From the IMG/VR virus record IMGVR_UViG_3300030102_006934, positions 310,001 to 374,000 of that record: DNA of 64,000 bases; one strand, given 5' to 3'. A model generated the notes under the pieces. That model was not told the origin of the DNA, did not search any database, and was given only the letters and a program-made list of their open reading frames with translations. This document shows, piece by piece, positions 448 through 41,024 of the stretch. The position numbers were made by a program, and so were the translations under genes. The first letter of the stretch is position 1, and each line of letters begins with the position of its first letter.

Positions 448-1230
448 ATGAAATATTTTTTCGACATAAAAGAGATAGATAAAAATTTAGCAATAGATTT
501 TATACAAGAAAGACACTACTCTAAAGTACTACCTAGATTGACTAAACACTGGTTGGGTTGTTTTTACGATGGTGAACTAGTGGGTGTTTTAACTTTAGGT
601 TGGGGTACACAGCCTTTACAGACAATAAAAAAATTATTCCCTAAGTTGGTATCACAAGATTATTATGAAATCGGTAAAATGTGTATGGATGATAAAATGC
701 CTAGGAACTCAGAGTCTCAAATGATATCTTCAGTTGTCAGATGGATTAAAATTAATCTACCAGAAAAAAAATTTTTATACACATGGGCTGATGGTATTGT
801 AGGTAAAGTGGGTTACGTTTATCAAGCTTCAAATTTCATATATGGTGGTTTTATATGGACAGATATCTATATATCTCCGAAAGGTGAAAAAATACACCCT
901 AGAAGTTCTAAGTCACTACTAAAAGAAAATGCTGATTTTTTGGGTAAAGATAAGTTATTTTGGATGACCCCAGATTTTATGAAAACAAAGGGTATTAGAA
1001 GGATAAGGGGTAAACAATTTAGGTATATTATACCCCTAAGTAAAAGTTCTAAAAAAATATTAAAAAATGGGTCCACTGTCACTTGGGGTATAGAATACCC
1101 TAAAGCTAAAGATCTATTATGGAAAGAACAAGTTGCTAAAGGTAAATATGATACACTAAAAGAGATACCACAAATGAATTTAAGTGTTGTAGAGATTAAT
1201 GAAAAAAATGTGAACGCACATAAGAATTAA
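448..1230 (+). CDS. Mom-family (GNAT-fold) DNA adenine modification protein
   Basis: FIQERHYS, LVGVLTLG, EIGKMC, PRNSESQMIS, TWADG, GYVYQASNFIYGG motifs typical of Mu Mom homologues. Confidence 0.8.
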   Translation: MKYFFDIKEIDKNLAIDFIQERHYSKVLPRLTKHWLGCFYDGELVGVLTLGWGTQPLQTIKKLFPKLVSQDYYEIGKMCMDDKMPRNSESQMISSVVRWIKINLPEKKFLYTWADGIVGKVGYVYQASNFIYGGFIWTDIYISPKGEKIHPRSSKSLLKENADFLGKDKLFWMTPDFMKTKGIRRIRGKQFRYIIPLSKSSKKILKNGSTVTWGIEYPKAKDLLWKEQVAKGKYDTLKEIPQMNLSVVEINEKNVNAHKN

Positions 1231-1264
1231 ACACTTTTTTTGATACTTATTAATAAAGTGTCAC

Positions 1265-1444
1265 ATGTCAACAATAGAAGATATTCTATACAAAGCTCAA
1301 GAACTTAATCTGAGAGATGAGTTATTCAGAAATTTAAAGAAAATAAAAAATAAAGATGAATATAAATATTTAGATTTAAAGTCTTTATATGAAATAGCCT
1401 TTAATGATTTAGTTTGTGATTTTTCTGAAATTAAAAACACTTAA
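1265..1444 (+). CDS. Small hypothetical protein (59 aa, MSTIEDILYKAQE...)
   Basis: ATG to TAA frame filling the gap; ATACTTATTA motif variant upstream. Confidence 0.65.
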   Translation: MSTIEDILYKAQELNLRDELFRNLKKIKNKDEYKYLDLKSLYEIAFNDLVCDFSEIKNT

Positions 1445-1470
1445 TTATTTTTTATTTAAATTAATTTTAT

Positions 1471-1478
1471 TATATTTG
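1471..1478 (+). promoter_or_regulatory. Bacteroidota-type -7 promoter element TAnnTTTG
   Basis: TATATTTG upstream of ATG 1505; same element near 5968, 6698, 9469, 17912 and on the - strand near 15080, 26238, 27468, 48170. Confidence 0.65.
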
Positions 1479-1504
1479 TGTTATTAAATGTAAAACACAA
1501 AAAA

Positions 1505-2266
1505 ATGAAATACGATTTAATACAAAAATTTATCAACAGAGAGGTCAAAGCTAAAAGTATTTTTACCATCAAAAAGATAAATAAGAGTGAAGCTTATGAC
1601 TTTATTAAAAAGTATCATTATTTAGGTGACGCAAAATTTTTCTCTAAATTTGCGTATGGTTTATTTAGTAGAGAGGATGATGGTCTTATTGGGGTCACCA
1701 CTTTTTCTAACCCACAAGGAGCCACAACTATGAAAGGTTGGTTTAACCTAACTAACCAAGATCAATCTGTTTTGGAACTAAGTAGATTGTGTGTTATACC
1801 AGAACTAAATGGGACTAACGCCACATCTTTCTTATTGGGTAATAGTATTAAGATGTTGAAGAAAGAAGGTATAAGATCAGTAATAACTTTAGCTGATAAT
1901 TCTAGACATAGTGGCAGTATCTACCAAGTTTGTAACTTCACTTATTTTGGTTTATCTAATAAAAAGAGTGATTTTTTCTTATACAAAGGTGATGGTACCT
2001 TTAAGAAAAATTTTAGAGGTAAAACAAATGATGCACAAGGTGTTTGGTTACCAAGAACCCAAAAACACAGATACGCCTATATTTTAGATAAGACACTACT
2101 ATGTAATTATGAACCTAAACCTTACCCAAAGAAAGAAGACTTTGGTGTGAAAGAATGTACTTGTGATAATAACGTTATCCTTGACAAAAGGTTTAACGTT
2201 AAGTATACTTGTCCCAACTGTACCAATGAGTTGAAATTGGTAGAAGAGGAGAAAGAGTGGTTTTAA
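1505..2266 (+). CDS. Second Mom-family DNA modification protein with C-terminal Cys cluster
   Basis: FIKKYHYL, LIGVTTF, LELSRLC, NATSFLL, TLAD, HSGSIYQVCNFTYFG; C-terminal CxC...CxxC; ATG 1505 preferred over GTG 1478. Confidence 0.8.
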   Translation: MKYDLIQKFINREVKAKSIFTIKKINKSEAYDFIKKYHYLGDAKFFSKFAYGLFSREDDGLIGVTTFSNPQGATTMKGWFNLTNQDQSVLELSRLCVIPELNGTNATSFLLGNSIKMLKKEGIRSVITLADNSRHSGSIYQVCNFTYFGLSNKKSDFFLYKGDGTFKKNFRGKTNDAQGVWLPRTQKHRYAYILDKTLLCNYEPKPYPKKEDFGVKECTCDNNVILDKRFNVKYTCPNCTNELKLVEEEKEWF

Positions 2267-2282
2267 TACCGCATTTATTTTT

Positions 2283-3191
2283 ATGAAGGAAAAAATTAGA
2301 CAAATACTTAGAGAAAGACAACTAGAGTTAGACCTACAAGCAAAGTCTAACGATATTGATGAAACCAAATATGATAGGTGCTCACGTTACGAATACAACA
2401 GTAAGCATAAAAATCTATGTTTAGATTTGGCAAGTATGGGTAGTTTTTTACATAAAGATTTAGGTCTTAAAGATATAATAAACTCTAAAATATTACTAAT
2501 GGGGGAGGTCAAAGATCTAAACCACCAATACCAAGAACCCTTAAGTATTTTATATAATAAACCAAACTTTGAAGAAATCAAAAAGGTATCTGATGGTTAT
2601 TATGTTGAACATCTAAACAATAAAGTGGTATTATTTGATGAGTCTGGTCAATGGCACCATGTAAACAAATTGAATACTAATTATTCAGATTTGGCAGAAC
2701 TTTTAACAGAACTTTTTATTAGGAGTGGGGATATTAAAAACATAGTCAATAAAAATAGTTTAGGTTTAAAAAAATACTTATTATCACAAAAAGAAAATTT
2801 AAGATCTTTAATGGATAAACATTTTCAGTTAGAAGAGTATAAAGAATTTGTTAGAAACACAAAGACACTTTCAGAAAGAGGTGAAAGAGCTGAAAACGAA
2901 GTCAAGTCAATATTAGAAAAAGTAGGATTCAAAACACTATACCAAGGAGGGCATGGTGACTTTATTGATATGATATTTGGTATTGATTTAATTATGAATT
3001 ATAATGATGAGGTAGTTACAATACAAGTGAAAAATTCGGAAAGCCAAGCTTTAAAGGCTTCAGAACAATTCACCTATAGAAGGGTTGATTATTTTGCTTC
3101 ACCCACCAATTTAGGCATGGTCATTAAAAACAGAAAGGGTGAAATAACAGAACTAGATAGAGATGGTAGGATAACTAATGAAACCGAATAA
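2283..3191 (+). CDS. Protein with N-terminal KIRQILRE signal and C-terminal PD-(D/E)xK-like nuclease domain
   Basis: GERAENEV...GIDLIM...TIQVK. Confidence 0.55.
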   Translation: MKEKIRQILRERQLELDLQAKSNDIDETKYDRCSRYEYNSKHKNLCLDLASMGSFLHKDLGLKDIINSKILLMGEVKDLNHQYQEPLSILYNKPNFEEIKKVSDGYYVEHLNNKVVLFDESGQWHHVNKLNTNYSDLAELLTELFIRSGDIKNIVNKNSLGLKKYLLSQKENLRSLMDKHFQLEEYKEFVRNTKTLSERGERAENEVKSILEKVGFKTLYQGGHGDFIDMIFGIDLIMNYNDEVVTIQVKNSESQALKASEQFTYRRVDYFASPTNLGMVIKNRKGEITELDRDGRITNETE

Positions 3192-3516
3192 AAGCATACC
3201 TAGTTTTTGTTTTGAATCCCCTTGGTTAAAACCATTTGACCTTTCAACAGAATTTGGGGAAATAAATGTGACTACTAGGGTAATACCTAGGGTAAGACCA
3301 ATTTGGGTTCAAGAACTCACAGTTACTACTGATACCAATAACATCATAACCGAAGAACCTATCGATTCACCACAAGGTAACCTATTTTATTTCGATTACC
3401 AGTTTCAAAATATAACAGATCCCATTGTTTATGGTGATGGTTCTTGGTCTTATGAAAATTTATTTGAAGGTACTATTGGTATTAAATTAGAAATTAAAGA
3501 ACATAAATTTATTTAA
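3178..3516 (+). CDS. Hypothetical protein
   Basis: ORF track, overlapping start/stop. Confidence 0.6.
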   Translation: MKPNKSIPSFCFESPWLKPFDLSTEFGEINVTTRVIPRVRPIWVQELTVTTDTNNIITEEPIDSPQGNLFYFDYQFQNITDPIVYGDGSWSYENLFEGTIGIKLEIKEHKFI

Positions 3517-3560
3517 TGAAACTAGATAATATTTATTAATAAGAAAACAGTTATTAAAAT

Positions 3561-5915
3561 ATGTCTAAAAAAACAAAACTAGGTTCTTGGTTTACCGACC
3601 CAATGAAAAGGGGTTGGATAAATAGAGATACCCTCATAAACGAAGAGGGTGATTTTGATTGGGTCAGAGATGTATCCCCCTCAGTACCAAAGTGGGAAGA
3701 TAGGGAAAAAATAGACTTAGTAGGTTTTTTAATAGAACTAGCAGAATTTGATTTAGGTATTTTAGATGATTTAAATGGTCAAGGAGTTTTAGAACCAACA
3801 GATGAGTATAGAATGGGATACACCGATGACGAATGGGGTGAATACGGTTTTGATAGGTGGAGAGATGTTGATTGGAAGGCAGATGGTATGATGAACACTC
3901 AGTTAGATAGGGAAGCTCTTAGTTTTTCACACGATATTATTTACTACCTAGAAAATGCGAATCACCCAAAATGGGAATTTGTTAAATGGGATACAACAGA
4001 GTACAATCTAGAACACTCAACACACCAAGATGTAATTATTGTTAAAAATAAAAAACAAGATAGATATTTTGCCATTTATTTAGAGGGTTCACCTTGGGAT
4101 GGTATAAATTTTGATGATAACTCAGTAGTTGAGGTTTTCCCAAAGAAAATAACAAAAACCATTTATGAATCAAAAATAACCAATAAAACTATCGTAGAAA
4201 CCGATTTTGAGTGGGCTTCAGAATTTAATTGGTCCAAAGAAATGTTAGATAGTTTATTGGAAGATTGTAAAACATTAAAGGTCGCTAATTTTAATGTTAG
4301 AAACAAGCAACCTTATCGTTCAGCTGGAGGTCCAGCGATTATGTTTTTAAGTAGGTGTAGAGAATGGTGGGATTACTTTAGTAGTTTACCATTAAGTCAT
4401 TCTGGTAGAGGACCAGCAGAATGGTTCACTGAGGACAGTTACAAAAATGGTGAGTATGGGGTTATTTGGAATCCAAATTGGGGTACAAAAAGAATAACTC
4501 CACAGTTAGAGGATTTGAAAAATGGTTATACGTCAGCTATAACAACACCTTGGGGTTATGGTATAGAAAAACAATTAAATGGTATAAGTGGTAGTGAAGC
4601 TTGGTTCGTAGTAGATGAGAACAATAAACCAGTTTACAACTTAATGCCTAATAATGTTAAAGAGTATGCTAAAATATATGAAGAAGAATTTTTTGGTAAC
4701 AAGTTAAATGAATCTGAAGATTTTGAATGGGTTAAAAAATATGATATTAACAACTTCTTTGATGAATATTTTAAAAAAGAAAATTTTTACATGGACACTT
4801 TGGGTGATAACCCAAGTAATTACACTTTAGTATCGGATAATACTGTTTTTGTTTCTGATGATGATGTGTTTATTAATATTTCAGAAGATGATTTAGATGA
4901 AATGATTGACGAGGAAGATTACATTTTAAGGGAACTTCTTAAAACAGGTAAATATGATGATGGTGGTTATGGTTACGAATTTGAGCAAGAGGAAATGAAT
5001 TATATTAGAATACCAGACCCAAAACGACTTGAAACTATTTTACAAGACTATTCTGAAGAATTACCACAATTTATTGAAGACGGTAAGATACAAAATTTAA
5101 TGAACAATAGTAATCTAAATGAAATAGTAGAAATTGTTAAGTGTCCAAAATTCGATGCATTATGGAACGAATTTACTGATAACTTTCTTATTGATTATGG
5201 TTATGTAATTTCTGAGTATAAATCAGAATACGTAACCCAAATTTATAACAGCGTTGTGGAAAATTTAAACTTCGAATTTGGTTGGGATTATGGGAATTTA
5301 ATTTATGAATTTACCTTCAAAAAAGATGATTTCTTTAATTATTTTTCAAACAATAATGGTGAAACTATAGAAGACTACTTATTAGATAAGTTAAAACCTA
5401 TAATTAAAGAAGATATGCAAACGACTTACGCGGATGCATTTGGTGGTGATTACAGTGAATACTTGGATTACCACTATAACAATTTTATAGATAAAGTAGA
5501 AGATTTTGTATGGTCAGGTGAGTTAGAGGGTTGTATTAATAATGTTGAAAAATGGGAATCATTAGGATTTAGTGTCAAAAAAAGTAGCTATGGTCATAGT
5601 CTTGACAACGCTTGGATGGAAATTGTTACAGATAAATTTACGTATGAAAAGGATGTAACACGTTATAATTCTACAGAAAAGAAAACAGAAACAAAACCAT
5701 TTGTTTTTACCGCTAGGTTAAATAGTGATGCCACCCGTTGTATATCATTAAAAGCACAATATCGTGATGTTTGGGGAACACCAATAAAACTATATCAAAT
5801 GGAAGAGAATGATGAGGGCATCACACCTAGACAAACAAAAAAATTGGTAAATGATTTTATAAAAAATAATACACAAAAGTCAGTTAATAAATTACTTTTC
5901 GATGATGAAGATTAA
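3561..5915 (+). CDS. Acidic modular protein with three E-x-D-F-[DE]-W tags
   Basis: LINEEGDFDWVRD, IVETDFEWASE, LNESEDFEWVKK; ATATTTATT upstream at ~3529. Confidence 0.8.
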   Translation: MSKKTKLGSWFTDPMKRGWINRDTLINEEGDFDWVRDVSPSVPKWEDREKIDLVGFLIELAEFDLGILDDLNGQGVLEPTDEYRMGYTDDEWGEYGFDRWRDVDWKADGMMNTQLDREALSFSHDIIYYLENANHPKWEFVKWDTTEYNLEHSTHQDVIIVKNKKQDRYFAIYLEGSPWDGINFDDNSVVEVFPKKITKTIYESKITNKTIVETDFEWASEFNWSKEMLDSLLEDCKTLKVANFNVRNKQPYRSAGGPAIMFLSRCREWWDYFSSLPLSHSGRGPAEWFTEDSYKNGEYGVIWNPNWGTKRITPQLEDLKNGYTSAITTPWGYGIEKQLNGISGSEAWFVVDENNKPVYNLMPNNVKEYAKIYEEEFFGNKLNESEDFEWVKKYDINNFFDEYFKKENFYMDTLGDNPSNYTLVSDNTVFVSDDDVFINISEDDLDEMIDEEDYILRELLKTGKYDDGGYGYEFEQEEMNYIRIPDPKRLETILQDYSEELPQFIEDGKIQNLMNNSNLNEIVEIVKCPKFDALWNEFTDNFLIDYGYVISEYKSEYVTQIYNSVVENLNFEFGWDYGNLIYEFTFKKDDFFNYFSNNNGETIEDYLLDKLKPIIKEDMQTTYADAFGGDYSEYLDYHYNNFIDKVEDFVWSGELEGCINNVEKWESLGFSVKKSSYGHSLDNAWMEIVTDKFTYEKDVTRYNSTEKKTETKPFVFTARLNSDATRCISLKAQYRDVWGTPIKLYQMEENDEGITPRQTKKLVNDFIKNNTQKSVNKLLFDDED

Positions 5916-5989
5916 TTTTATACCATTTTTTCATTAAAAATAGTTGTTTTTATCTTTTTTTAACCTTATATTTGTGTAAATTACATTAA

Positions 5990-6682: not shown

Positions 6683-6709
6683 TAAATAAAAATTTGTTAT
6701 ATTTGAAAT

Positions 6710-7889: not shown

Positions 7890-7984
7890 TTTATTAATAC
7901 TATATTTAAATAAAGATAAGGGGTTACACAATAACGTTTGGAACTCTGTAACCTTAAAAAAGAACCTTATCTTTTTTTTATTTT

Positions 7985-8056
7985 GGCCCCTTCGTCTAGT
8001 GGTTAGGACGCTAGGTTTTCATCCTAGAAACAGGAGTTCGATTCTCCTAGGGGCTA
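7985..8056 (+). tRNA. tRNA-Glu(TTC)
   Basis: Cloverleaf; anticodon arm CTAGG-TT-TTC-AT-CCTAG; GTTCGATTC. Confidence 0.95.
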
Positions 8057-8147
8057 CTGAGTAGGTTTTCGGTGTAAAACTCTTCGGAGTACCTAATCAA
8101 AATCCAGCCATTGTTCAGAATGGGAGATTATGAATAAAAACCGAAAC

Positions 8148-8221
8148 GGTCTGGTAGTTCAGTTGGTTAGAATACCTGCCTGTCACGCAGGGGGTCGCGA
8201 GTTCGAGTCTCGTCCAGACCG
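8148..8221 (+). tRNA. tRNA-Asp(GTC)
   Basis: GGTCTGG/CCAGACC acceptor; CCTGC-CT-GTC-AC-GCAGG. Confidence 0.95.
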
Positions 8222-8231
8222 CAAATATTTA

Positions 8232-8316
8232 GGAAGATTGGCAGAGTGGTCGAATGCACTGGTCTTGAAAACCAGCATACCGAGAGGTATCGAAGGTTCG
8301 AATCCTTCATCTTCCG
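8232..8316 (+). tRNA. tRNA-Ser(TGA)
   Basis: GGAAGAT/ATCTTCC; CTGGT-CT-TGA-AA-ACCAG; long variable arm; G73. Confidence 0.95.
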
Positions 8317-8322
8317 CAAAAT

Positions 8323-8349
8323 AAACCCAAATACTCTTTGGGTTTTTTT
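8323..8349 (+). terminator. Rho-independent terminator
   Basis: AAACCCAAA-tactc-TTTGGGTTT plus T-run. Confidence 0.8.
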
Positions 8350-8373
8350 GTTAACCCAAACTATTTATTGTTG

Positions 8374-9132
8374 ATGAAACTTTTTGAAGTGTACGAAGAT
8401 ATAGTTATTGAAAACTCTTGGGGTAAACTAGAGGAAATACTACAATCAGGTTTATTTCAAGAAGAAGGTGACTCTAAATTAAATGAATTACTAGAGAAGT
8501 CACAATTGTTAATTTTTAAAGCCTTTGACATAAACCCCAAAGAGGGTGGTAAATATTTTGTTTCTGGTTCCGCTAGACTATTTAAAAATCCTAGATTATT
8601 GAATGTGTTAAACAAACACGATAAATCTTTTGAGTTAGTATTAGGTGATTTAGATGTGGTAATACCTAATCAAGAAAACTGGGAAACATTATACAAAAAC
8701 TATACAAATACAAATTCTGAATTTATAAAAGAGTTGTCACAAAAAATAAGTAAATCACCAGAAGATATTAAAAATAAGTTTTTAGAACAAAAGGGTAATT
8801 TTACAAAAGGTATTTATAGACCTGGTGTTGGCGGTATGGAACTTGTTGATGACGATATGGAAGCTTTTAAAGTTTGGGACCCTAGTAAAGCTAAAGACGC
8901 AAAAGACATGTCTGTTAGGAGCCAAAGTGACATTCTAAAAGACAGTGTTAATATAGGTGGTTATTTTTTTATGAATATAAAAGATGTATTTGATTATAAA
9001 TCAAAATTGAGTAGGGAAAAAGAAAAAAACATTGTGGCTTTCTTAAAAGATTATTTAACAGGAGAAGAGTCCCCACAAAGAGCCGAAGAACTTTTCAATA
9101 AAATAGGTGAAGAACTTGGAAAGGATAAATAA
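8374..9132 (+). CDS. Putative nucleotidyltransferase-fold protein
   Basis: FVSGSARL...GDLDVVI (GS...DxD); TATTTATT just upstream of ATG 8374. Confidence 0.55.
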   Translation: MKLFEVYEDIVIENSWGKLEEILQSGLFQEEGDSKLNELLEKSQLLIFKAFDINPKEGGKYFVSGSARLFKNPRLLNVLNKHDKSFELVLGDLDVVIPNQENWETLYKNYTNTNSEFIKELSQKISKSPEDIKNKFLEQKGNFTKGIYRPGVGGMELVDDDMEAFKVWDPSKAKDAKDMSVRSQSDILKDSVNIGGYFFMNIKDVFDYKSKLSREKEKNIVAFLKDYLTGEESPQRAEELFNKIGEELGKDK

Positions 9133-9150
9133 TTTAACTATCTTTACACA

Positions 9151-9438
9151 ATGAAAGGTAAAGAATACTTTAATAGGTTCACGGAAGATGAAAAAGTGGT
9201 TTGGTTAAAAAATTTCCACAAGTTTGGTTTTAATGATTTTAAGTCTTCAGAACAAGTAATGAAAACTGAATTTAAAAACTACTTTCAGTTTTTTTTCGGT
9301 ATATTCCCAATAGAAAAAACTGAAGAAGGTTATAGTTATTGGTCAAACCTTTTCCACAAATATAGAGAATACGATAAGTTAACTATTAAAATTGGTCATA
9401 ATTTTAAGAGTTATGTAACTGAACCAAAAATTTTTTAG
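9151..9438 (+). CDS. Hypothetical protein
   Basis: ORF track. Confidence 0.7.
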   Translation: MKGKEYFNRFTEDEKVVWLKNFHKFGFNDFKSSEQVMKTEFKNYFQFFFGIFPIEKTEEGYSYWSNLFHKYREYDKLTIKIGHNFKSYVTEPKIF

Positions 9439-9468
9439 AAATAGGTTGTTATATTAAAAAGTTTTATT

Positions 9469-9496
9469 TATATTTGTATCAGTTCTTTGAAAATAT
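9469..9496 (+). promoter_or_regulatory. TAnnTTTG promoter plus boxA-like leader of the tRNA operon
   Basis: TATATTTG-tatc-AGTTCTTTGAAAATAT directly before the RNA; near-identical TATATTTG-tgtt-AGTTATTTGAAATAT precedes tmRNA. Confidence 0.55.
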
Positions 9497-9752
9497 GACC
9501 GTGTGGCGGAATTGGTAGACGCTTACAAGAAAAACTAAAACTATGGTAAAACTTGGTTTATATGTTTCCCTCTCACCCTTGTGTTGGTGAAAAAACATAT
9601 AAGTATAATATAATATAATAATAACAACTAAAAGATTACTAACGCGTTAGTTGAAACAAATTATAATATGATAAATAATAAAGAAAAATCCAGTTGTTTT
9701 AGTTTGATTGTATGAACGAAAGTTCGTGAAGGTTCGAATCCTTCCATGGTCA
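9497..9752 (+). ncRNA. tRNA-Leu-like RNA with a ~180-nt insert replacing the anticodon loop
   Basis: Acceptor GACCGTG/CATGGTC+A73, D arm GCGGAATTGGTAGACGC, anticodon stem TACAA/TTGTA, variable arm GAAC-GAAA-GTTC, T arm GAAGG-TTCGAAT-CCTTC. Confidence 0.8.
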
Positions 9753-9850
9753 CAATAGGGTGGTAGATAAAATAGTAAAAAATCAATAATGCACCGAAAG
9801 GGGGAAATTCAATTTAGCATAAAAATCAATTACAACCACCCACAGTTTTA

Positions 9851-9924
9851 GGACTTTTAGCTCAGTTGGTTAGAGCACTTGACTCATAATCAAGGGGTCG
9901 TAGGTTCGAGCCCTACATGGTCCA
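9851..9924 (+). tRNA. tRNA(CAT), probably Ile2 (lysidine type)
   Basis: CTTGA-CT-CAT-AA-TCAAG; C4-G69 and A73; D arm resembles Ile2; elongator Met not excluded. Confidence 0.85.
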
Positions 9925-9933
9925 CGTTAATTA

Positions 9934-10017
9934 GCTCGGGTGGCGGAATAGGTAGACGCGTCAGACTTAAAATCTGATTCCCAGTTGGGAGTGAGGGTTC
10001 GATTCCCTCTCCGAGTA
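9934..10017 (+). tRNA. tRNA-Leu(TAA)
   Basis: TCAGA-CT-TAA-AA-TCTGA, long variable arm. Confidence 0.95.
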
Positions 10018-10020
10018 CTA

Positions 10021-10231
10021 GAGAGAGTGATGGGTACTCTCGGTGTTAGTAGAGGTCACGAAACTCTACCCCAAAAGCCTACGCGCGGGAAGAGCGAGGT
10101 ATGTGGATACACGGATGGGTCATCCCCCTACCCCCACATCAAGGATTGACTTTTTTATGTGGTAAGACACTAATGAGTATTTTGAATAGGAAAAGAACGT
10201 TAAAATCTAGTACACTAAACCCTAGTGTACG
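10021..10231 (+). ncRNA. Candidate structured ncRNA in tRNA spacer
   Basis: GC-rich; stems GAGAGT/ACTCTC, GTAGAG/CTCTAC, ATGTGG/CCACAT, GGATG/CATCC, GTACACTA/TAGTGTAC. Confidence 0.5.
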
Positions 10232-10236
10232 CATTT

Positions 10237-10310
10237 GGATGGGTAGCTCAGCTGGATAGAGCATCTGCCTTCTAAGCAGACGGTCGCAGGTTCGAATCCT
10301 GCCCCGTTCA
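10237..10310 (+). tRNA. tRNA-Arg(TCT)
   Basis: TCTGC-CT-TCT-AA-GCAGA; GTTCGAATC. Confidence 0.95.
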
Positions 10311-10315
10311 CTATT

Positions 10316-10342
10316 AAAACCTCGACATTAGTTGGGGTTTTT
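10316..10342 (+). terminator. Rho-independent terminator
   Basis: AAAACCTCGAC-atta-GTTGGGGTTTT plus T-run. Confidence 0.75.
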
Positions 10343-10391
10343 TATTGCCAATTAAAATAGGTTACCTACCTTTGTTCTAAACAAATAAGTT

Positions 10392-11132
10392 ATGTTAAAT
10401 ATATTTGAGGTTGGTGGATGTGTTAGAGATGAAATTCTAGGTGTAAGTACCAACGACATCGATTTTACTTTTGTTATAGAAGATACCAACCAAACAGTGG
10501 ATGAGGGTTGGGATCAAATGTTATCTCACCTAAAAGAGGCTGGGTTTAAAATATTTTTAGAAACAAAAGAATGTTTTACTGTTAGAGCTAAATTCCCCAA
10601 AAACCATATTAATGAAGGATTAGTGGCTGACTTTGTTATGGCTAGGAAAGAAGTTGGTTACATTGATGGTACTAGGAAACCTATTTTAGAACTAGGTACA
10701 CTGTTAGATGACTTAGTTAGAAGAGATTTTACAATCAATGCTTTAGCAAAAGATATGGACGGTAATATTATAGACCCCTTCGGTGGTGTAAAACATCTTA
10801 AAGAAGGTATCCTAATAACACCTCTAGATTCAAGAAAAACCATGATGGACGACCCACTTAGAATATTAAGAGCTTTAAGATTTTCTATCACAAAAGGTTT
10901 TGAGGTATCTGAAGACATTATGGAAGCTATGAAGCAACCAAACATTTTAGAGAAATTAAAAACAACAGTTAGCCAAGAAAGAATTAGAGAAGAGTTGACT
11001 AAGATGATGAAATTCGATACAATTAAAACAATGAAACTACTAGTTAATATTGATAACGAGTTTATTCATGGGTTTTTAAATATCATTTTTGAAAAAGACA
11101 TGTGGTTAAACCCAACTACCAAAAACAAGTAA
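10392..11132 (+). CDS. cca: tRNA nucleotidyltransferase (CCA-adding / poly(A) polymerase family)
   Basis: VGGCVRD, DIDF, DLVRRDFTINALA, DPLRILRALRF, VSQERIREE; adjacent tRNAs lack encoded CCA. Confidence 0.9.
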   Translation: MLNIFEVGGCVRDEILGVSTNDIDFTFVIEDTNQTVDEGWDQMLSHLKEAGFKIFLETKECFTVRAKFPKNHINEGLVADFVMARKEVGYIDGTRKPILELGTLLDDLVRRDFTINALAKDMDGNIIDPFGGVKHLKEGILITPLDSRKTMMDDPLRILRALRFSITKGFEVSEDIMEAMKQPNILEKLKTTVSQERIREELTKMMKFDTIKTMKLLVNIDNEFIHGFLNIIFEKDMWLNPTTKNK

Positions 11133-11149
11133 ATTAAAAAACAAAAAAA

Positions 11150-11404
11150 ATGAATTTATTAAATAATATCGTAGATTATTACGAAGAAGAGGAAATATTA
11201 AAGGCAGATGGTTTCGATGAGGCGGTTATTGGTATAGAAGAAGGTACCATGAGATTGATTTATTCAGTTACTAAGTGTATTGAAATACTAATGACTGAAG
11301 ATGATATGTCTATGGAAGATGCTATGGAACATTTTAGATATAATGTTAGTGGTGCTTATGTTGGTAAAAAAACACCTATATGGTCAGAGGATATGTTTTA
11401 TTAA
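11150..11404 (+). CDS. Conserved phage hypothetical protein
   Basis: ADGFDEAVIG...YNVSGAYVGKKTP. Confidence 0.75.
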   Translation: MNLLNNIVDYYEEEEILKADGFDEAVIGIEEGTMRLIYSVTKCIEILMTEDDMSMEDAMEHFRYNVSGAYVGKKTPIWSEDMFY

Positions 11405-11541
11405 CATATTTATATAGTAGTAAAATAACTTTTACATAATTTGTTTTTTTATATAGAAATAATGTACAATATTTTTGAACCAGAGAACATTCATGACGAG
11501 GATGACGAGTTAGATATTTTCTAGTATATTTATTAGAAAAT

Positions 11542-11615
11542 GGGGGATTAGCTCAGCTGGCTAGAGCACCTGCCTTGCACGCAGGGGGTCATCGGTTCGA
11601 CTCCGATATCCTCCA
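11542..11615 (+). tRNA. tRNA-Ala(TGC)
   Basis: G3-U70; CCTGC-CT-TGC-AC-GCAGG. Confidence 0.95.
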
Positions 11616-11678
11616 CAATAAAATTGTTTTTACTCACCACTATCACTTATTAACTATCTTACTATATTTATATTCGAT

Positions 11679-12163: not shown

Positions 12164-12673
12164 ATGAAGGTCTTAGTATTGAATATGGATTACAGTCCTA
12201 TAAACGTAACATCCCTACAGAGAGGTTTTAAGTTAGTATTTAAAGGAAAGGCAGAAATAGTAACACACGAAATAAAAAACCCAATCAAAACGGAAAGAAA
12301 AAAATACAGAAGACCAACGGTAATAAGACTTTTAAGATATATTTCAGTACCATTTAGAAAGGTTAAATTAAATAGACAAAATATTTTTAGGAGAGACGAT
12401 TATAAGTGTGTGTACTGTTACTCCAAAGATAACCTCACCTTAGACCATTTAATACCTAAATGTAAGGGTGGTCAAAATAGTTGGTCTAATTTAGTTACTT
12501 CTTGTGGTAGTTGTAATGTTAAAAAGGGTGATAAGGATGTTGACTTATTCTTAGAAGAGAATAACATTGAAATGAGTCATCAACCATTTAAACCAACATA
12601 CTTATATTTTGTAGAAAAAATAAATAATGTAAACCCAGATTGGAAACAGTTTGTGGGTATAGTAAAAAAATAA
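12164..12673 (+). CDS. HNH endonuclease (McrA-like)
   Basis: VLVLNMDYSP, RDDYKCVYC, TLDHLIP, WSNLVTSCGSCNVKK. Confidence 0.9.
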   Translation: MKVLVLNMDYSPINVTSLQRGFKLVFKGKAEIVTHEIKNPIKTERKKYRRPTVIRLLRYISVPFRKVKLNRQNIFRRDDYKCVYCYSKDNLTLDHLIPKCKGGQNSWSNLVTSCGSCNVKKGDKDVDLFLEENNIEMSHQPFKPTYLYFVEKINNVNPDWKQFVGIVKK

Positions 12674-12848: not shown

Positions 12849-13559
12849 ATGGAATGGGAAGGTTATGATTGGCAAATAGGTGAGAGATGGGGTATTATTC
12901 ACCCAAATAAACCAATTTGTTATTACGATAAGGACGCGGTTAAAATAAATAAAAAGGGTGAACTAGAATTATACACACACTATAACCCTAGAAAATTTGA
13001 TGGTAAAACTGTTAACACAGGCGTTGGTTTGATTAATTGCAAAGAGAAGTTCGAATATGGTAGGTTCGACATAGATATTAAATTACCTAAAGGACCATCT
13101 TTGTGGCCAGCTTTTTGGATGTGGTCTTATAACTTTTGGCCACCAGAGATTGATGTGTTTGAGGCGTACTCAAATAAAAAGGGTAGTTATTTTAATTGGA
13201 ATATAGATGCTCTTTGGGGGAACTTTTGGAATGTTAAGAGTAATTTACATTTGGGAATTCAACCAGAAAATTATCAATATGGTGCAAAAAGACATTGGTT
13301 GGGCTGGGAATGTCCTAGTAAGGATTTTCATAAGTATAGTGTGGAGTGGTTCCCAAATGAGGTAAACATTCTATTTGACGATAGATTGGTCAGAAAAATT
13401 AATGATGAAAAAACTTTATCACAATTAAGAGATTTCCCAATGAATGTTATTATAAATACACACATTAGGCCAGGTTACCCAGCAGAGGATAAAGAATTAA
13501 TCACAAAAATGGTTTGTAAAAACTTTAGATACTCTAAGTTTTACCCTTACAATTTATAG
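12849..13559 (+). CDS. Glycoside hydrolase family 16 (laminarinase/beta-glucanase-like)
   Basis: YGRFD, LWPAFWM, PPEIDVFE (ExDxxE), FHKYSVEW. Confidence 0.9.
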   Translation: MEWEGYDWQIGERWGIIHPNKPICYYDKDAVKINKKGELELYTHYNPRKFDGKTVNTGVGLINCKEKFEYGRFDIDIKLPKGPSLWPAFWMWSYNFWPPEIDVFEAYSNKKGSYFNWNIDALWGNFWNVKSNLHLGIQPENYQYGAKRHWLGWECPSKDFHKYSVEWFPNEVNILFDDRLVRKINDEKTLSQLRDFPMNVIINTHIRPGYPAEDKELITKMVCKNFRYSKFYPYNL

Positions 13560-17183: not shown

Positions 17184-17891
17184 ATGGTAGCTTACGTATT
17201 TGATGTAGATGGTACTCTGACACCTAGTAGATTACCCATGAATCAAGAATTCAGTCAATTTTTTACTAATTGGTCGAGGGATAAAGAAGTATTTTTTGTT
17301 ACAGGTTCAAATAGTGATAAAACTATTGAACAAGTTGGTTTAGATATATGGAAAAACATTACCGCATCATTACAGTCTTGCGGGAATCAAATATTCATAG
17401 ATGGTAAAGAAGTTTACAAAAACGAGTGGGAACCTAATGAAAAATTAATTAGTTTATTAGAATACTTTTTAATGAGTTCTGACTATAGAAAAAGAACTTC
17501 TAACCATATTGAAGAAAGGGTTGGTTTATTAAACTTCTCTGTTGTTGGTAGGGATTGTACACAACAAGAGAGAGAAAATTATTACGAGTGGGATAAAACG
17601 GCTCAAGAGAGGGTCTCCATGGTAAAAGAGATTATGGAGAAGTTTACAGAGCTAGAAGCTTCTGTTGGTGGTCAAATATCCATAGACATTCACCCTAAAG
17701 GTGCTAATAAAGGACAAGCTAAAGATTGGATATTAAATCATTTAGGTAAAGATACAAGTATTTATTTTTACGGTGATAAAACAGAATTTGGTGGGAATGA
17801 TTATGACCTAGCAAAAGTACTTACAGAAGATAGACATAAAGTCTTTCAAGTGAGTGGTTGGGAGGAGACTTATAAACTACTAAAAAAATAG
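17184..17891 (+). CDS. HAD-IIB phosphomannomutase-like enzyme
   Basis: FDVDGTLTPSR, IEERVGLLNFSVVGR, GGQISIDI, GDKTEFGGND. Confidence 0.85.
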   Translation: MVAYVFDVDGTLTPSRLPMNQEFSQFFTNWSRDKEVFFVTGSNSDKTIEQVGLDIWKNITASLQSCGNQIFIDGKEVYKNEWEPNEKLISLLEYFLMSSDYRKRTSNHIEERVGLLNFSVVGRDCTQQERENYYEWDKTAQERVSMVKEIMEKFTELEASVGGQISIDIHPKGANKGQAKDWILNHLGKDTSIYFYGDKTEFGGNDYDLAKVLTEDRHKVFQVSGWEETYKLLKK

Positions 17892-17938: not shown

Positions 17939-18335
17939 GGGGGTATTCTGGATTTGACTTGCAGTAATCAAGATTGGTGTAAGCATGTCGTGAAATGATA
18001 CTATCACGTAAATCTGTGTATTACAACTCTTAAATGGCAACATTTTAGAAAACGCAACAGTAGGTCATTTTGTGGCTGAAGATGCAGCTGTAGTAGCCTA
18101 ATTAGATTAGGACTAACTACCCATCACAACTAAGACTCCGATATTAGAGTATGTGATGTCAACGAATCGGAAACAGACTTAGTATGGTATAGTAGCCAAG
18201 TCGAACTACTATCAATGTTGTTGAACACTGTAAAAAAATCAACTATTTTGGTAAGTTAGAAAACTTAATCCTAAACATGTAGAAGACCGTTAAGATGCGG
18301 TAAGGACATGGGTTCGACTCCCATTACCTCCACCA
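17939..18335 (+). ncRNA. ssrA: tmRNA
   Basis: 5' GGGGGTATTCTGGATTTGAC, 3' GGTTCGACTCCCATTACCTCCACCA, G3-U; tag frame 18036-18101 GNILENATVGHFVAEDAAVVA*. Confidence 0.95.
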
Positions 18336-29172: not shown

Positions 29173-29174
29173 TT

Positions 29175-33911: not shown

Positions 33912-33990
33912 TTGGAATGGTCTTCTTTCTATTCGTTTTTATTTTTTTGGTTACCTGTTCTATCATCGATGATAATATTAATAAGAAAAA

Positions 33991-35454: not shown

Positions 35455-35455
35455 A

Positions 35456-36787: not shown

Positions 36788-36789
36788 AA

Positions 36790-37816: not shown

Positions 37817-37892
37817 TTTTAGGCTTTAATTTATTAAATAAAAATACTATTATTTTAACAAATAAATTATTTAGTTTAAAAATAGTGTAATT

Positions 37893-38063
37893 ATGCCAAA
37901 ATCAAGAAATAGAAAAAATCATAAGAAAAAAGTAGAAGCTAGAAGAAAAAGAATGGATGCCAAAAAAAGAACTATGGAGAATCAGTTCAGAAAAATGGTT
38001 GAGCAAAGAATGAAAGAAATGAATGCTAATAACGATGAAAGTAAAGAACAAGAAAATGTCTAA
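37893..38063 (+). CDS. Small basic protein (56 aa, MPKSRNRKNHKKK...)
   Basis: Open frame read by eye; overlaps next start. Confidence 0.65.
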   Translation: MPKSRNRKNHKKKVEARRKRMDAKKRTMENQFRKMVEQRMKEMNANNDESKEQENV

Positions 38064-38694
38064 TAAAGAAAGTGATGTATTAGTTAGTGATTTAGTTTAT
38101 GACGGTTATCATAAAATAGAAGAAGTAGTTAGAAACTACGAAGGTAAAGAAATAAAAACTGAAGTTTTAAAAAAAGGCCAAAATGTATCAGCTGTTGTGT
38201 ACAATACTGAAAGTAAAGAGTACATTTTTATCGAAAAATACAAAGTATCTGCTGACGGTGTTACTGTTGAAATAATAAACGGTAACGTTGGTCAAAATGA
38301 AAAACCACAACAATCAATAAAAAGGTTGGTTACGGAGTTGACTGGTTATAAAGTAGAAACAGTAAAAGAAATAACTAACTATTACATGGACACCAATAAT
38401 TCAGATGAGATTTGTTCTTTATACTATATTGAGGTTAATGAATTAGTTGTGGATGATTTGGAGTTTGAGGATTATAAATTAATTAAAGTTGAAAAACTAG
38501 GTTTGGGTGGTAAGCTATTTGTAGAAGACCCTATGAACATGATGAGTTTTAATACAGAAGAAGATAAAAAAGTAAAACCACCATATCAAACTATTGACGC
38601 AAAATCTTTAATAGCTGTTATGTGGGTTGAAAACAACAACATTTTAAAAGATGTTGCAGAACTTATAACTAACGCTAAAATAAGAAGTTTATGA
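38056..38694 (+). CDS. Nudix (ADP-ribose pyrophosphatase-like) protein with degenerate Nudix box
   Basis: GNVGQNEKPQQSIKRLVTELTGY; IDAKSLIA. Confidence 0.65.
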   Translation: MSNKESDVLVSDLVYDGYHKIEEVVRNYEGKEIKTEVLKKGQNVSAVVYNTESKEYIFIEKYKVSADGVTVEIINGNVGQNEKPQQSIKRLVTELTGYKVETVKEITNYYMDTNNSDEICSLYYIEVNELVVDDLEFEDYKLIKVEKLGLGGKLFVEDPMNMMSFNTEEDKKVKPPYQTIDAKSLIAVMWVENNNILKDVAELITNAKIRSL

Positions 38695-38897
38695 TGAACG
38701 AAAAAATAGTGGATGCTTTAAGGACAAAGTATCAATACGACATGAAAAAATCAGTATCTTTAATAGATTCTGAATTAAACAACCCAACCACTGAGACTAT
38801 AATTAATGTAGACCGTTTAATTGGTGAGTTTTATGAAGCTAAAGAAAAAGCTTCCTACTTGGAGGCTATCATTAAGAATTTAAAGGGGGAAGAGTAA
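38691..38897 (+). CDS. Hypothetical protein
   Basis: ORF track. Confidence 0.65.
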   Translation: MMNEKIVDALRTKYQYDMKKSVSLIDSELNNPTTETIINVDRLIGEFYEAKEKASYLEAIIKNLKGEE

Positions 38898-39562
38898 TGA
38901 CAAACAATCAAATATTTTTCAATATAGATACACAACAAGACTTTTTTGATAGGGAGTGTGTAGATATACCAAATGGGGAATCTGTTTTAGAAAATTTAAA
39001 ATCAATTAGTAATTATTTAAGGGATAACCAAATTAAAACTATCCATACAATAAGATGGTTCATAGAGGATTCGGAATTCTTTTCTGAGATGCCAGATTAT
39101 AAAACTAAATTCCCTAAACATTGTATTAAAGATACAAAAGGATCTAGATTTATAAGTCAGACAGCACCTATAGGTTATTTTTTGATAAATTGGGAGGGTG
39201 GTGACTTAGTATTCCCAGAAATACACAGAAACACAAACATTGTGGTAACTAAAAAAAATACTGATTTATTTGGTGGTAACTCTTTTTCCGAAGCTTTAAT
39301 AAATAATCTAGGAATTCCAATGATGCAAAGACCATCTTTTTATCTGTACGGTGTTTCAGTTGGTTCCACAGCATTGTCACTATTAAGAAGAGGTTATTCA
39401 GTGACGGTCATTAGTGATGCCAATATAAACTTAGATGGACAAGTATTTAAAAAAGAGGATATAATAAATAGTACTATAAACCCAGAAACTGGTAAACAAG
39501 TAAATGAGGTGTTACCATTAAATTTTATAACAACAAAAGAGTTAATAGATGGAAATAAATAG
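38897..39562 (+). CDS. Nicotinamidase/isochorismatase-fold protein, catalytic Cys apparently absent
   Basis: IDTQQDF, FPKHC, VTK, YGVSVGSTAL, VISDA. Confidence 0.7.
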   Translation: MTNNQIFFNIDTQQDFFDRECVDIPNGESVLENLKSISNYLRDNQIKTIHTIRWFIEDSEFFSEMPDYKTKFPKHCIKDTKGSRFISQTAPIGYFLINWEGGDLVFPEIHRNTNIVVTKKNTDLFGGNSFSEALINNLGIPMMQRPSFYLYGVSVGSTALSLLRRGYSVTVISDANINLDGQVFKKEDIINSTINPETGKQVNEVLPLNFITTKELIDGNK

Positions 39563-40172
39563 TGAATCAATAGAGAGATGGGGTTCGATAGGTTTGTTAG
39601 AGGGACTACCTATATGGGAGAAAAATGAGTTAGCCTTAATTTTAGATAACGCCACAAAAATATTGTTAGACCAAATTAAGAGAAAATCTTTAAGCGATGA
39701 ATTTTTAGACATTTATGATAATGTGTACATCCCTATTTGTAGAAGATTATATAGAAGGGTTGGCCCTAGGTTTGACATTATTAAGATGATGGATAGATTG
39801 ATGGATGATACGATACTTAATTTTGACTTACTTAAAGGGAAAGTTGAAAACAAAAAAAAGGAAAAACTAAGTCAAAAAGACCCAATAGTAGAGTTCTGTG
39901 TTAATTTTTCCGATTCTTACGAGGATGAAGAAACTCTTAAAAGTTTTTTATCAGAAGAAGATTATGAAAAAAAGGTAGATCTAATTTTAGAAAGAATGCG
40001 GTCTGTGTTATTAAATAATAGGAATGTTTTAAGTTTTAAGAATACTGGTACCGATTGGGATATAAAATTATCGGAAGAGAAAAGGTCAGTTAGTCATGTT
40101 AGGTTTTGGAATCAAAAAATGTCTAACTCTTTTCTACTACAATCTCTATCAGATATAAACAAAGGTATATAA
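39549..40172 (+). CDS. Hypothetical protein; N-terminus resembles that of T4-like major capsid proteins
   Basis: IERWGSIGLLEGL...LALILDN...IPICRR. Confidence 0.5.
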   Translation: MEINSESIERWGSIGLLEGLPIWEKNELALILDNATKILLDQIKRKSLSDEFLDIYDNVYIPICRRLYRRVGPRFDIIKMMDRLMDDTILNFDLLKGKVENKKKEKLSQKDPIVEFCVNFSDSYEDEETLKSFLSEEDYEKKVDLILERMRSVLLNNRNVLSFKNTGTDWDIKLSEEKRSVSHVRFWNQKMSNSFLLQSLSDINKGI

Positions 40173-40657
40173 TGGAAAAGGCAGAGAGGTTAAAAAATCA
40201 AATTTTCTTTGATGATAGGGGTTCATTTAGTCCTCTATCACTTAATTTATTAGATAAAGTATGGGTTCAAAGTAATGTTAGTGTCAACCCCCAAAAATGG
40301 ACTCTAAGAGGACTCCATTTCCAAAAGGGTTGGTACTCACAAGCTAAACTGATAAAAGTTATAAAAGGTGAGATATTGGACTTTGTGGTGGATTTAAGAG
40401 GCGATACCCCATCCAAAGTTGAGTTTTTTCAAATGTCTGAGGGTGATGAAATAATTGTCCCTAAAGGTTACGCCCATGGGTTTATCACTTTAGAAGATAA
40501 TACTGTAGTACAATATTTAGTGGATAATGAGTACAACCCAAGTTCAGAAGGTAATATAGTGTGGACCAATTTCGAATCTATTTTGAATAAAATAAAAGAG
40601 GTTTCCCCAGAATTTGATGATTCTAAAGTGATAATTTCAAAAAAAGATTTAATTTAA
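40172..40657 (+). CDS. rmlC: dTDP-4-dehydrorhamnose 3,5-epimerase
   Basis: DDRGSF, TLRGLHFQ, QAKLI, VVDLR, GYAHGF, YLVDNEY. Confidence 0.9.
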   Translation: MEKAERLKNQIFFDDRGSFSPLSLNLLDKVWVQSNVSVNPQKWTLRGLHFQKGWYSQAKLIKVIKGEILDFVVDLRGDTPSKVEFFQMSEGDEIIVPKGYAHGFITLEDNTVVQYLVDNEYNPSSEGNIVWTNFESILNKIKEVSPEFDDSKVIISKKDLI

Positions 40658-40842
40658 TCACAAAACCTGTTGACCATTTAAAATAAGTTTAGTAGTATTG
40701 TATTGTATTTAAACAGAGAAGTCTGAGAAAAAGAAAGAAGAGAAATTTTTTAAACTTGGTTATCGTGTTAAGTTAAAAAGTTGTAAACTTAATTATTGAA
40801 AAGAGACTTAATGTTTAAGGGGGTATAAAATCCCCCATATAA

Positions 40843-40914
40843 GCGGGTGTAGTTTAAAAGTAAAACATTTAACATCCAGTTAGAAGTTGGCGGTGCGAAT
40901 CCGACCTACCCGCT
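40843..40914 (+). tRNA. Non-canonical tRNA-Gly(TCC), copy 1
   Basis: GCGGGTG/TACCCGC+T73; loop CATCCAG (A33); T arm GGCGG-TGCGAAT-CCG(A)CC; D loop lacks GG. Confidence 0.8.
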
Positions 40915-40952
40915 CTAAAATTAAGAAAGACAGTTATACTGTCAAAATATAA

Positions 40953-41024
40953 GCGGATGTAGTTTAATGGTAAAACGTTTAACATCCAGTTAGAAGTTAG
41001 GAGTTCGATTCTCACTCATCCGCT
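40953..41024 (+). tRNA. Non-canonical tRNA-Gly(TCC), copy 2
   Basis: GCGGATG/CATCCGC+T73; loop CATCCAG (A33); T arm AGGAG-TTCGATT-CTC(A)CT. Confidence 0.85.

Follow-up and report, generated by a model that had tools for sequence, protein, structure and literature searches.

The 64-kb window analysed here (G+C content 30%) is part of IMG/VR record IMGVR_UViG_3300030102_006934, a 380,343-bp viral contig of an uncultivated marine phage. It carries two neighbouring genes for proteins of the Mom family of DNA modification enzymes (Mom1 and Mom2) and, about 39 kb away, a pair of tRNA-Gly(UCC) genes of deviant structure (copy 1 and copy 2; Table 1). Both had been claimed in an original prediction made from the letters of the window alone. 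The Mom-like genes were borne out by matches to Pfam family PF25680, to PHROG 1384 and to the Mu Mom structure 8bv8, the positions given for the tRNA genes proved exact, and their A33 and T-stem bulge were seen. The prediction had also cautioned that genes so far apart offer no evidence of linkage within the window, which holds. In other marine phages, tRNAs of the same deviant family lie beside Mom genes, and we propose that they may serve as a dedicated source of glycine for DNA modification.

Mom1 and Mom2 are distant paralogues (30% identity over 138 amino acids) that both score above the curated cut-off of the Mom family PF25680 (27.1 bits), and each matches PHROG 1384, ‘Mom-like DNA modification protein’. 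Mom1 could be aligned by sequence to the crystal chain of Mu Mom, 8bv8 (7.5e-17), and the AlphaFold model of Mom2 (AF2, pLDDT 84.7) had 8bv8 as its best match in the PDB (E 5e-11, TM 0.69 by target), ahead of generic GNATs. An alternative GTG start for Mom2 is present at 1478. When eight diverse Moms were aligned, including Mu Mom, Mom1, the Mom of the cultured phage Melnitz, Mom2 and the B-type and D-type proteins described below, H58, Y59, S124, D149 and Y159 (Mu numbering) were invariant. R111 is kept in Mom2 and is replaced by Lys in the Mom1 clade, and R151 of Mu Mom aligns with Ile in Mom1 and Ser in Mom2. In Mu Mom both arginines were essential, and the R111K substitution strongly impaired the enzyme (PMC13219725). 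Because R151 is conserved in no clade other than that of Mu, it is probably specific to the Mu clade and not a defining residue of the family. The alignment was poor across the helix-turn-helix-like insertion (residues ~175-209 of Mu Mom, needed for activity), and the conserved R216-Y217 that follows it is present. At its C-terminus (window 2150-2266) Mom2 has a four-cysteine ribbon (CxC ... CPxC) that is conserved in 12 proteins of the Mom2 clade and absent from Mu Mom.

Both tRNA-Gly copies, read by hand, fold as full cloverleaves. They have G1-C72, C2-G71, G3-C70, U73 and a UCC anticodon (C35, C36), which together are the glycine identity set of the bacterial glycyl-tRNA synthetase (GlyRS). 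The anticodon loop of both copies is C-A-U-C-C-A-G, in which A33 replaces the universal U33, and in minimum-energy folds C32 pairs with G38 to give a six-pair anticodon stem and a five-base loop. In both, one A bulges out of the T stem on the 3’ strand, and CCA is not encoded. Copy 1 has in addition A18 and a UGC T loop (G55), and the elbow of copy 2 has the normal G18 G19 and a UUCGA T loop. Against the RF00005 gathering cut-off of 29 bits, copy 1 lies just below and copy 2 above. Since ARAGORN and Rfam miss such tRNAs or score them near threshold, standard annotation probably under-reports them.

A hairpin lies just 5’ of copy 1 (Table 1), and a second hairpin (40930-40944) precedes copy 2; both are possible processing or termination signals. 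A relative, L004, keeps both tRNA copies and both hairpins, the second of them with compensatory changes. Short metatranscriptome contigs from three of four RNA runs cover 40705-40913 (the leader and copy 1), one of them stopping at the 3’ end of the tRNA, and none from the same runs was found over copy 2. These contigs are thin evidence, consistent with expression of copy 1 but not proof of it, and DNA carry-over is possible. In 16 long open reading frames (ORFs) of the window, glycine is encoded by GGT 351 times, GGA 71 times, GGG 56 times and GGC 19 times (GGT 71%, GGA and GGG together 25%). Because UCC reads minority glycine codons here, two extra tRNAs with this anticodon would be unexpected under codon supplementation, which is weakened by these counts as a reason for the pair.

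A pattern made of the acceptor stem and D arm, run on viral contigs, separated tRNA-Gly(UCC) into two classes: a canonical class that has U33, encodes CCA and forms a regular T stem, and a deviant class with A33, G38 and the T-stem bulge, usually without CCA. A broader pattern matched 25 viral contigs and 61 metagenome loci, every one of the latter marine according to its record name. The A33 (A-type) family comprises 25 distinct sequences that fall into four groups: A (window-like, two copies), B/C, D and E. Aligned to a covariance model built from six family members, these sequences had standard pairs in 519 of 519 pair cells (100%) and compensatory double changes at 9 pairs. Covariation extends to all five pairs of the T stem, around a bulged A that is invariant and lies between pairs 63 and 64. 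Position 18 varies among G, A and U, and G19, C56 and A58 are kept. A further type, the G-type, was represented in 38 viral contigs by 21 distinct sequences. It shares the identity elements of the A-type; its T stem has four pairs and a bulge, and its anticodon loop has eight bases, C-A-U-U-C-C-A-G, with an extra A before U33. Pairing in the G-type is 99.8%, with 13 compensatory pairs. The glycine identity set is invariant in the 46 distinct members of the family, G1-C72, C2-G71 and G3-C70 being invariant in the G-type as well. The A-type loop is C-A-U-C-C-A-G in 25 of 25 sequences and the G-type loop is as given above in 21 of 21, letters that the search patterns themselves fixed.

Judged from the sequences, the deviant shape is above chance, and the tRNA family is real and under selection. 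Decay of the pair in the window is excluded, because pairing is 100% with compensatory changes in 25 relatives and both copies are kept in L004. Neither tRNA pattern was present in 185,579 bacterial and archaeal species, each represented by one genome, and searches of 50,697 cultured-phage records with A-, B- and D-type queries matched only canonical tRNA-Gly of Streptomyces phages and cyanophages; an origin from a host tRNA or an attachment site was dropped on these grounds. An exact search of viral contigs with the 17-nucleotide anticodon arm gave two chance matches inside coding sequence (L002 and L005), which were discarded.

In about 100 other marine phage contigs a tRNA of the deviant family lies directly beside a Mom gene. 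In ~30-kb phages with a D-type tRNA, the gene order is a ParB-like gene, Mom, the tRNA on the opposite strand, the small terminase and the large terminase, and the Mom ORF ends 2 nucleotides from the tRNA in 26 of 27 loci. The G-type tRNA directly adjoins the Mom ORF in 35 of 38 loci. At 21 of these the two genes share a strand and Mom comes immediately before the tRNA, abutting it or entering its 5’ end by up to ~12 nucleotides, and at 14 they are convergent. In several co-directional G-type cassettes, among them L310 (1353-2017) and L236 (4992-5656), the Mom frame stops four codons and a stop codon inside the 5’ end of the tRNA, so that processing by RNase P would strip the stop codon from the Mom message.

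To reduce ascertainment bias, homologues of the D-type Mom were sampled on long contigs and located by exact sequence; at all five of these loci the tRNA lies 1-3 nucleotides past the Mom stop codon. Moms that are 84-85% identical to the D-type Mom are paired with a G-type tRNA in the other orientation, which argues that the tRNA part was exchanged while the pairing was kept. The large terminase of the D-type phages was used as a neutral probe. It gave 80 related loci, 65 of which had enough upstream sequence to evaluate: Mom and tRNA were both present at 12, Mom alone at 3, the tRNA alone at none, and neither at 50. The three loci with Mom alone hold a separate Mom clade at another position. 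ARAGORN called no tRNA in the terminase-related loci, so that no canonical tRNA was found there. At L222, whose terminase is 96% identical, the ~1-kb segment with Mom and tRNA is replaced by another DNA modification gene, that of a TET-associated glycosyltransferase (L222 4667-5669, PF20691 4.6e-14). As a control, no Mom was found in 14 canonical phage tRNA-Gly loci (100 kb in total).

When 227 Mom ORFs were clustered at 50% identity, two clades (32 and 9 distinct members) were tRNA-adjacent in every copy. These clades are at most 33% identical to Mom2. The Mom2 clade itself (23 members) is linked to the tRNA at a distance, in the window and in a lineage of large phages that we call lineage B (contigs up to 69 kb, syntenic with contigs of 191-270 kb). 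There, a Mom2 homologue 73% identical to that of the window lies 8.2 kb upstream of a B-type tRNA, and the Mom2 homologue and the tRNA are the only features common to the 20-kb lineage B locus and the whole 64-kb window. The co-occurrence of Mom with A33 or bulged tRNA-Gly, which the original prediction had named as a check, is strongly positive (26/27, 35/38 and 5/5 loci, and 8.2 kb in lineage B), and the tRNA was never seen without Mom at the terminase-related loci. Taken together, the results demonstrate the family memberships of these proteins and tRNAs, the conserved deviant structure of the tRNAs and their genomic coupling to Mom in other phages.

Some D-type phages (L141 2628-3997, minus strand; L339 1834-3166) have two tandem Mom paralogues, 64% identical to each other, beside one tRNA, an arrangement that echoes the two Moms of the window. 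Conserved non-coding hairpin blocks flank the tRNA in lineage B and in its close syntenic relative, lineage C (L090 10890-11034 and 11215-11290; L095 1-133 and 207-290), and L090 has an insertion of ~110 nucleotides between the tRNA and the downstream block.

As Silva et al. (Nat Commun 2026, PMC13219725) show, Mu Mom takes glycine from Gly-tRNA(Gly), the donor that the original prediction had named, and attaches it to adenine N6 of double-stranded DNA. All three E. coli tRNA-Gly isoacceptors work and Gly-tRNA(Ala) does not, showing that the body of the tRNA is discriminated; the paper does not mention phage tRNAs, and it notes possible adverse effects of co-opting charged tRNA (PMC13219725). 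The affinity of elongation factor EF-Tu for the tRNA body is largely set by T-stem pairs 49-65, 50-64 and 51-63 (PMC7826273), and the bulge of the deviant family lies within this segment. We consider it fairly probable that the deviant family is a dedicated, non-translational glycine donor for the associated Moms. By homology with Mu Mom, Mom1 and Mom2 would act on double-stranded DNA, loading N6 of adenine with glycine taken from Gly-tRNA(Gly); the glycyl adduct would rearrange to N6-carbamoylmethyl-adenine and shield the DNA from nucleases. The deviant tRNAs would be transcribed and processed, would receive CCA from a phage or host nucleotidyltransferase, and would be charged by host GlyRS, all known bacterial glycine identity elements being kept. 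The A33 or eight-base loop, the loop-shrinking C32-G38 pair, the bulged A and the variable G18/U55 elbow would make them poor substrates for EF-Tu and the ribosome, and once charged they would serve mainly as the glycyl donor of Mom and not in translation. The glycine pool for DNA modification would then be neither sequestered by nor drained from protein synthesis. Charging, avoidance of EF-Tu and the ribosome, use by Mom and the DNA product are all steps that we infer. The interpretation in the original prediction is supported overall; its rationale of a large AT-rich genome was not supported, most cassettes being found in ~30-kb phages.

Several observations weigh against a dedicated glycine donor. 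Mu Mom works with ordinary host tRNAs, and hence such a tRNA is not a general requirement of Mom. The Mom1 clade (53 distinct members at at least 50% identity) was never seen adjacent to the tRNA; around the Mom of the cultured phage Melnitz, which belongs to this clade, the 40 kb searched contained no match to the tRNA model. Contigs of 95-226 kb with adjacent homologues of Mom1 (79%) and Mom2 (61%) match neither tRNA pattern, one Mom clade in ~30-kb phages has no deviant tRNA nearby, and the three remaining G-type loci (L322, L326 and L329) have no adjacent Mom. Lineage C (contigs of 191-270 kb) has kept an intact, covarying tRNA, and Mom2 is missing between the UvdE and DUF6011 genes, where lineage B has it; a walk along the 270-kb contig met no Mom in the 30 kb upstream or the 9 kb downstream of the tRNA. 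At the region of Mom2 in lineage B, lineage C instead has a 244-amino-acid tRNA nucleotidyltransferase and a serine hydroxymethyltransferase, a glycine-forming enzyme (L297 871-1605 and 4002-5144). The two genes lie about 11-15 kb upstream of the deviant tRNA, the nucleotidyltransferase, 66.5% identical to that of the window, at about 14.5 kb. Most of the D- and G-type loci were found via the tRNA, which is an ascertainment bias. The association of Mom and tRNA at the terminase loci (Fisher's exact p 1e-10) is uncorrected for relatedness and overstates independence because the phages are related. A role in decoding would likewise be compatible with the UCC anticodon, A37 and the loop being so strictly conserved. 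In the window itself, where the genes are 39 kb apart, the link would follow from the homology of the tRNA family and from lineage B, and not from position. We stop at fairly probable because not all Moms need the tRNA and because lineage C keeps the tRNA without a nearby Mom.

Other explanations were weighed on the same evidence. The tRNA could be a translational one that evades host defence, replacing a host tRNA-Gly hit by an anticodon nuclease or toxin, with A33 and G38 conferring resistance and the proximity to Mom reflecting a shared anti-defence ‘moron’ hot spot. Phage tRNAs with altered anticodon loops that escape host anticodon nucleases are documented (PMC10264068), and tRNA-Gly is a target of toxins that read the acceptor stem, such as FaRel2 (PMC11245113). 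The strictly kept anticodon, A37 and GlyRS identity set, the tRNAs without a nearby Mom in lineage C and at three G-type loci, and the variability of the site of the cassette, which can hold another anti-restriction gene instead, also speak for this explanation. However, it leaves unexplained the invariant T-stem bulge, the eight-base loop of the G-type and the variable G18/U55, all of which are expected to impair translation, as well as the Mom neighbour in 61 of 65 D- and G-type loci and in five of five Mom-side samples, in three arrangements and with two Mom clades. Moreover, a canonical acceptor stem gives no escape from toxins that read it, and codon usage shows little need for UCC. We regard evasion of this kind as unlikely. 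It is also quite unlikely that the phage tRNA tops up translation by refilling the protein-synthesis pool after Mom has drained Gly-tRNA late in infection. The same adjacency data fit such a role, as does the conservation of the UCC anticodon and of the GlyRS identity elements, and the Mom paper raises possible adverse effects of co-opting charged tRNA (PMC13219725). Yet a tRNA kept for compensation would be expected to resemble the canonical phage tRNA-Gly(UCC) genes, in which the same acceptor stem and D arm go together with U33, an encoded CCA and a regular T stem, whereas the family fixes features expected to disfavour EF-Tu and the ribosome, and UCC reads minority glycine codons here.

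A role in cis, in which the tRNA-like element regulates Mom expression, as Com does that of Mu mom, by acting as a processing site, terminator or charge sensor and is no glycine donor, seems to us very unlikely. Misexpression of Mom is toxic in Mu, RNase P cleavage in the 21 co-directional G-type cassettes would fall on the 3’ end of the Mom message or just short of it, and the 3’ end of the tRNA abuts the Mom stop codon in the convergent ones, all of which would suit such control. Against this, the element also lies at distances of 8 kb and 39 kb from Mom and in either orientation, where it cannot act in cis, and conservation extends to all of the aminoacylation identity set, to the acceptor stem and to the discriminator, well beyond the needs of a processing signal. 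That there is no functional link in this genome, the tRNAs being drifting or pseudo-tRNAs and both Moms using host tRNA-Gly like Mu Mom, would agree with the 39 kb between the genes, the score of copy 1 under the Rfam cut-off and the relatives with Mom1 and Mom2 that lack the tRNA patterns. The perfect pairing with compensatory changes in 25 relatives, the retention of both copies in L004 and the metatranscriptome contigs over copy 1 and its leader make it very improbable. Each of these explanations accounts less well than a dedicated glycine donor for the combination of adjacency, distance-independent co-occurrence, aminoacylation identity and anti-translational features.

The dedicated-donor reading could be extended to orthogonal pairs, in which the Moms of the cassettes would have evolved to read the bulged T stem and altered elbow and to ignore host tRNA-Gly, and the tRNA, kept off EF-Tu and the ribosome, would have DNA chemistry as its sole job. 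The two copies in the window (A18/G55 and G18/U55) might then each serve one Mom, perhaps for different sequence targets or even different acyl groups. We consider this extension doubtful.

Table 1. Features of the 64-kb window (nucleotide positions within the window)
Feature	Position	Strand	Evidence
Mom1, Mom-family GNAT, 260 amino acids; predicted Gly-tRNA-dependent DNA adenine modifier	448-1230	+	Pfam PF25680 1.5e-53, 181.9 bits
Mom2, Mom-family GNAT with C-terminal four-cysteine ribbon	1505-2266	+	Pfam PF25680 4e-30, 105.4 bits
G5/C5 hairpin followed by ATATAA, just 5’ of copy 1	40821-40838	+	Read from sequence
Deviant tRNA-Gly(UCC), copy 1	40843-40914	+	Rfam RF00005 28.5 bits; missed by ARAGORN
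Deviant tRNA-Gly(UCC), copy 2	40953-41024	+	ARAGORN tRNA-Gly(tcc); Rfam RF00005 47.1 bits
Possible PD-(D/E)XK restriction-type nuclease, 17 nucleotides 3’ of Mom2	2283-3191	+	Lead only
Canonical tRNA cluster, seven genes (Glu, Asp, Ser, Met, Leu, Arg, Ala)	7985-11616	+	ARAGORN; Rfam 59-70 bits
Class II tRNA nucleotidyltransferase (CCA-adding family), short, 246 amino acids	10392-11132	+	PF01743 head domain 2.8e-18; PHROG 24229 ‘tRNA nucleotidyltransferase’ 1.1e-65
Transfer-messenger RNA (tmRNA) gene, full-length	17939-18335	+	Rfam RF00023, 106.7 bits, E 1e-40; not reported by ARAGORN
Peptidase_M43 domain with Por_Secre_tail (type IX secretion) sorting domain	56959-58185	+	

The glycine pair lies 29 kb from the canonical tRNA cluster of the window, which also speaks against a translational need for the pair. 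The seven tRNAs of the cluster have regular 5-bp T stems and TTCGA T loops, as read from sequence. The tRNA nucleotidyltransferase gene sits within this cluster, and its product has the motif GGCVRDE...DIDF (at 10413), the GGxVRD...DxD signature of the nucleotidyltransferase head domain. Reading of the 3’ ends showed that an encoded CCA is absent from all nine tRNAs of the window, the canonical seven and the glycine pair alike. The enzyme is thus better seen as a general maturation enzyme for nine phage tRNAs, none of which encodes CCA; a dedication to the glycine pair was rejected, and the CCA-adding enzyme named in the original prediction is present without the special role suggested for it.

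The block 5’ of the tRNA pair (38023-40657, plus strand) encodes a NUDIX protein, an isochorismatase, a 207-amino-acid protein and an RmlC-like cupin. No other aminoacyl-tRNA-using enzyme was found among these neighbours, the 207-amino-acid protein giving no family or Atlas lead. Group E shares this local context of NUDIX, isochorismatase, unknown genes and tRNA, in the order NUDIX, isochorismatase, unknown, SET domain, unknown, tRNA (L147 10599-13343, minus strand), and its contigs probably belong to related large phages. At the other locus, the ORF downstream of Mom2 (2283-3191) had no Pfam or PHROG match, and its look-alikes in the ESM-Atlas carry restriction-endonuclease families (RE_MjaI, RE_TaqI, Mrr_cat or Hjc) in the ~110 amino acids at the C-terminus. 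It may be a restriction-type partner of the Moms; fusions of Mom with a restriction endonuclease are known in jumbo phages (PMC7824862).

No close relative of the window was found among the 50,697 cultured-phage records. The window peptidase bears a type IX secretion sorting domain (Table 1), which suggests a Bacteroidota host; the phage probably infects a member of this phylum. One contig with a D-type Mom is labelled ‘uncultured Polaribacter sp.’ in NCBI. The window also encodes two HNH endonucleases (12164-12673 and 44397-44759), a GH16 glycoside hydrolase (12849-13559), a eukaryotic-type phosphomannomutase (17184-17891) and a protein like gp88/gp82 of mycobacteriophage L5 (32223-33911).

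Phage tRNA genes have so far been explained by codon supplementation or, lately, by escape from tRNA-targeting defences. If the deviant family is a dedicated glycine donor, phage tRNAs would have a third role, outside translation, as cofactors that the virus itself encodes for DNA hypermodification. Such a donor would build on the 2026 finding that Mom draws on charged tRNA, and it would be the first parallel outside staphylococci to the partitioning of tRNA-Gly between translation and another pathway. The small two-gene cassettes can be directly reconstituted and so provide a natural test bed for the recognition of tRNA by GNATs. The components, Mom and a dedicated non-proteogenic tRNA-Gly, are both known. 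Our literature search found no paper linking Mom with phage-encoded tRNAs, and their virus-encoded combination for DNA hypermodification is undescribed in the literature searched.

Among known systems, the canonical phage tRNA-Gly(UCC), such as gene 102 of the Streptomyces phage Karimac, is nearly identical to copy 2 in acceptor stem, D arm and T loop (80% overall), but it has U33, A38, a regular 5-bp T stem and an encoded CCA, and the flanks of 14 such loci contain no Mom. The phage tRNAs that escape anticodon nucleases (van den Berg et al. 2023, PMC10264068) resemble the deviant family in being phage-encoded and in having anticodon loops that deviate from those of the host. However, they are translation-competent and lie in tRNA arrays, whereas the deviant tRNAs, with their bulged T stem and altered elbow, are found away from the array and coupled to a particular enzyme gene.

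On the enzyme side, Mu Mom (8bv8) shares with the Moms described here the PF25680 family, the GNAT fold, the five invariant residues H58, Y59, S124, D149 and Y159, and presumably both the donor, Gly-tRNA(Gly), and the target, adenine in double-stranded DNA. It differs in that Mu has no tRNA gene and any host isoacceptor is used, whereas here a deviant phage tRNA-Gly accompanies the enzyme. The two window proteins also depart from it in lacking R151, in having Lys for R111 (Mom1) and in adding a C-terminal zinc ribbon (Mom2); moreover, the window has two paralogues side by side, and no regulator like Com was seen.

A functional parallel to the tRNA is the staphylococcal non-proteogenic tRNA-Gly that serves FmhB, FemA and FemB (Rietmeyer et al. 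2021, PMC7826273), likewise a dedicated tRNA-Gly(UCC) for an aminoacyl-tRNA-dependent transferase outside translation. The likeness extends to the UGC T loop of copy 1, the altered D/T elbow, the six-pair anticodon stem with a five-base loop, and a changed T-stem region that governs EF-Tu affinity. The staphylococcal tRNAs are marked by a T loop in which UUC has become UGC or UGU; the triplet is UGC in copy 1 and still UUC in copy 2. The staphylococcal T stem is weakened by the pairs A49-U65, U50-A64 and A51-U63, whereas the deviant family has mostly G-C pairs and a bulged A. Furthermore, the staphylococcal tRNAs are reported only in staphylococci, and neither A33 nor an eight-base loop has been described for them; here the tRNA is encoded by a virus and the family occurs in marine phage contigs only, DNA would take the place of peptidoglycan as the acceptor, and a single-domain Mom GNAT stands where staphylococci have a Fem protein. 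By analogy, the deviant family would work like the staphylococcal non-proteogenic tRNA-Gly without being a member of that group.

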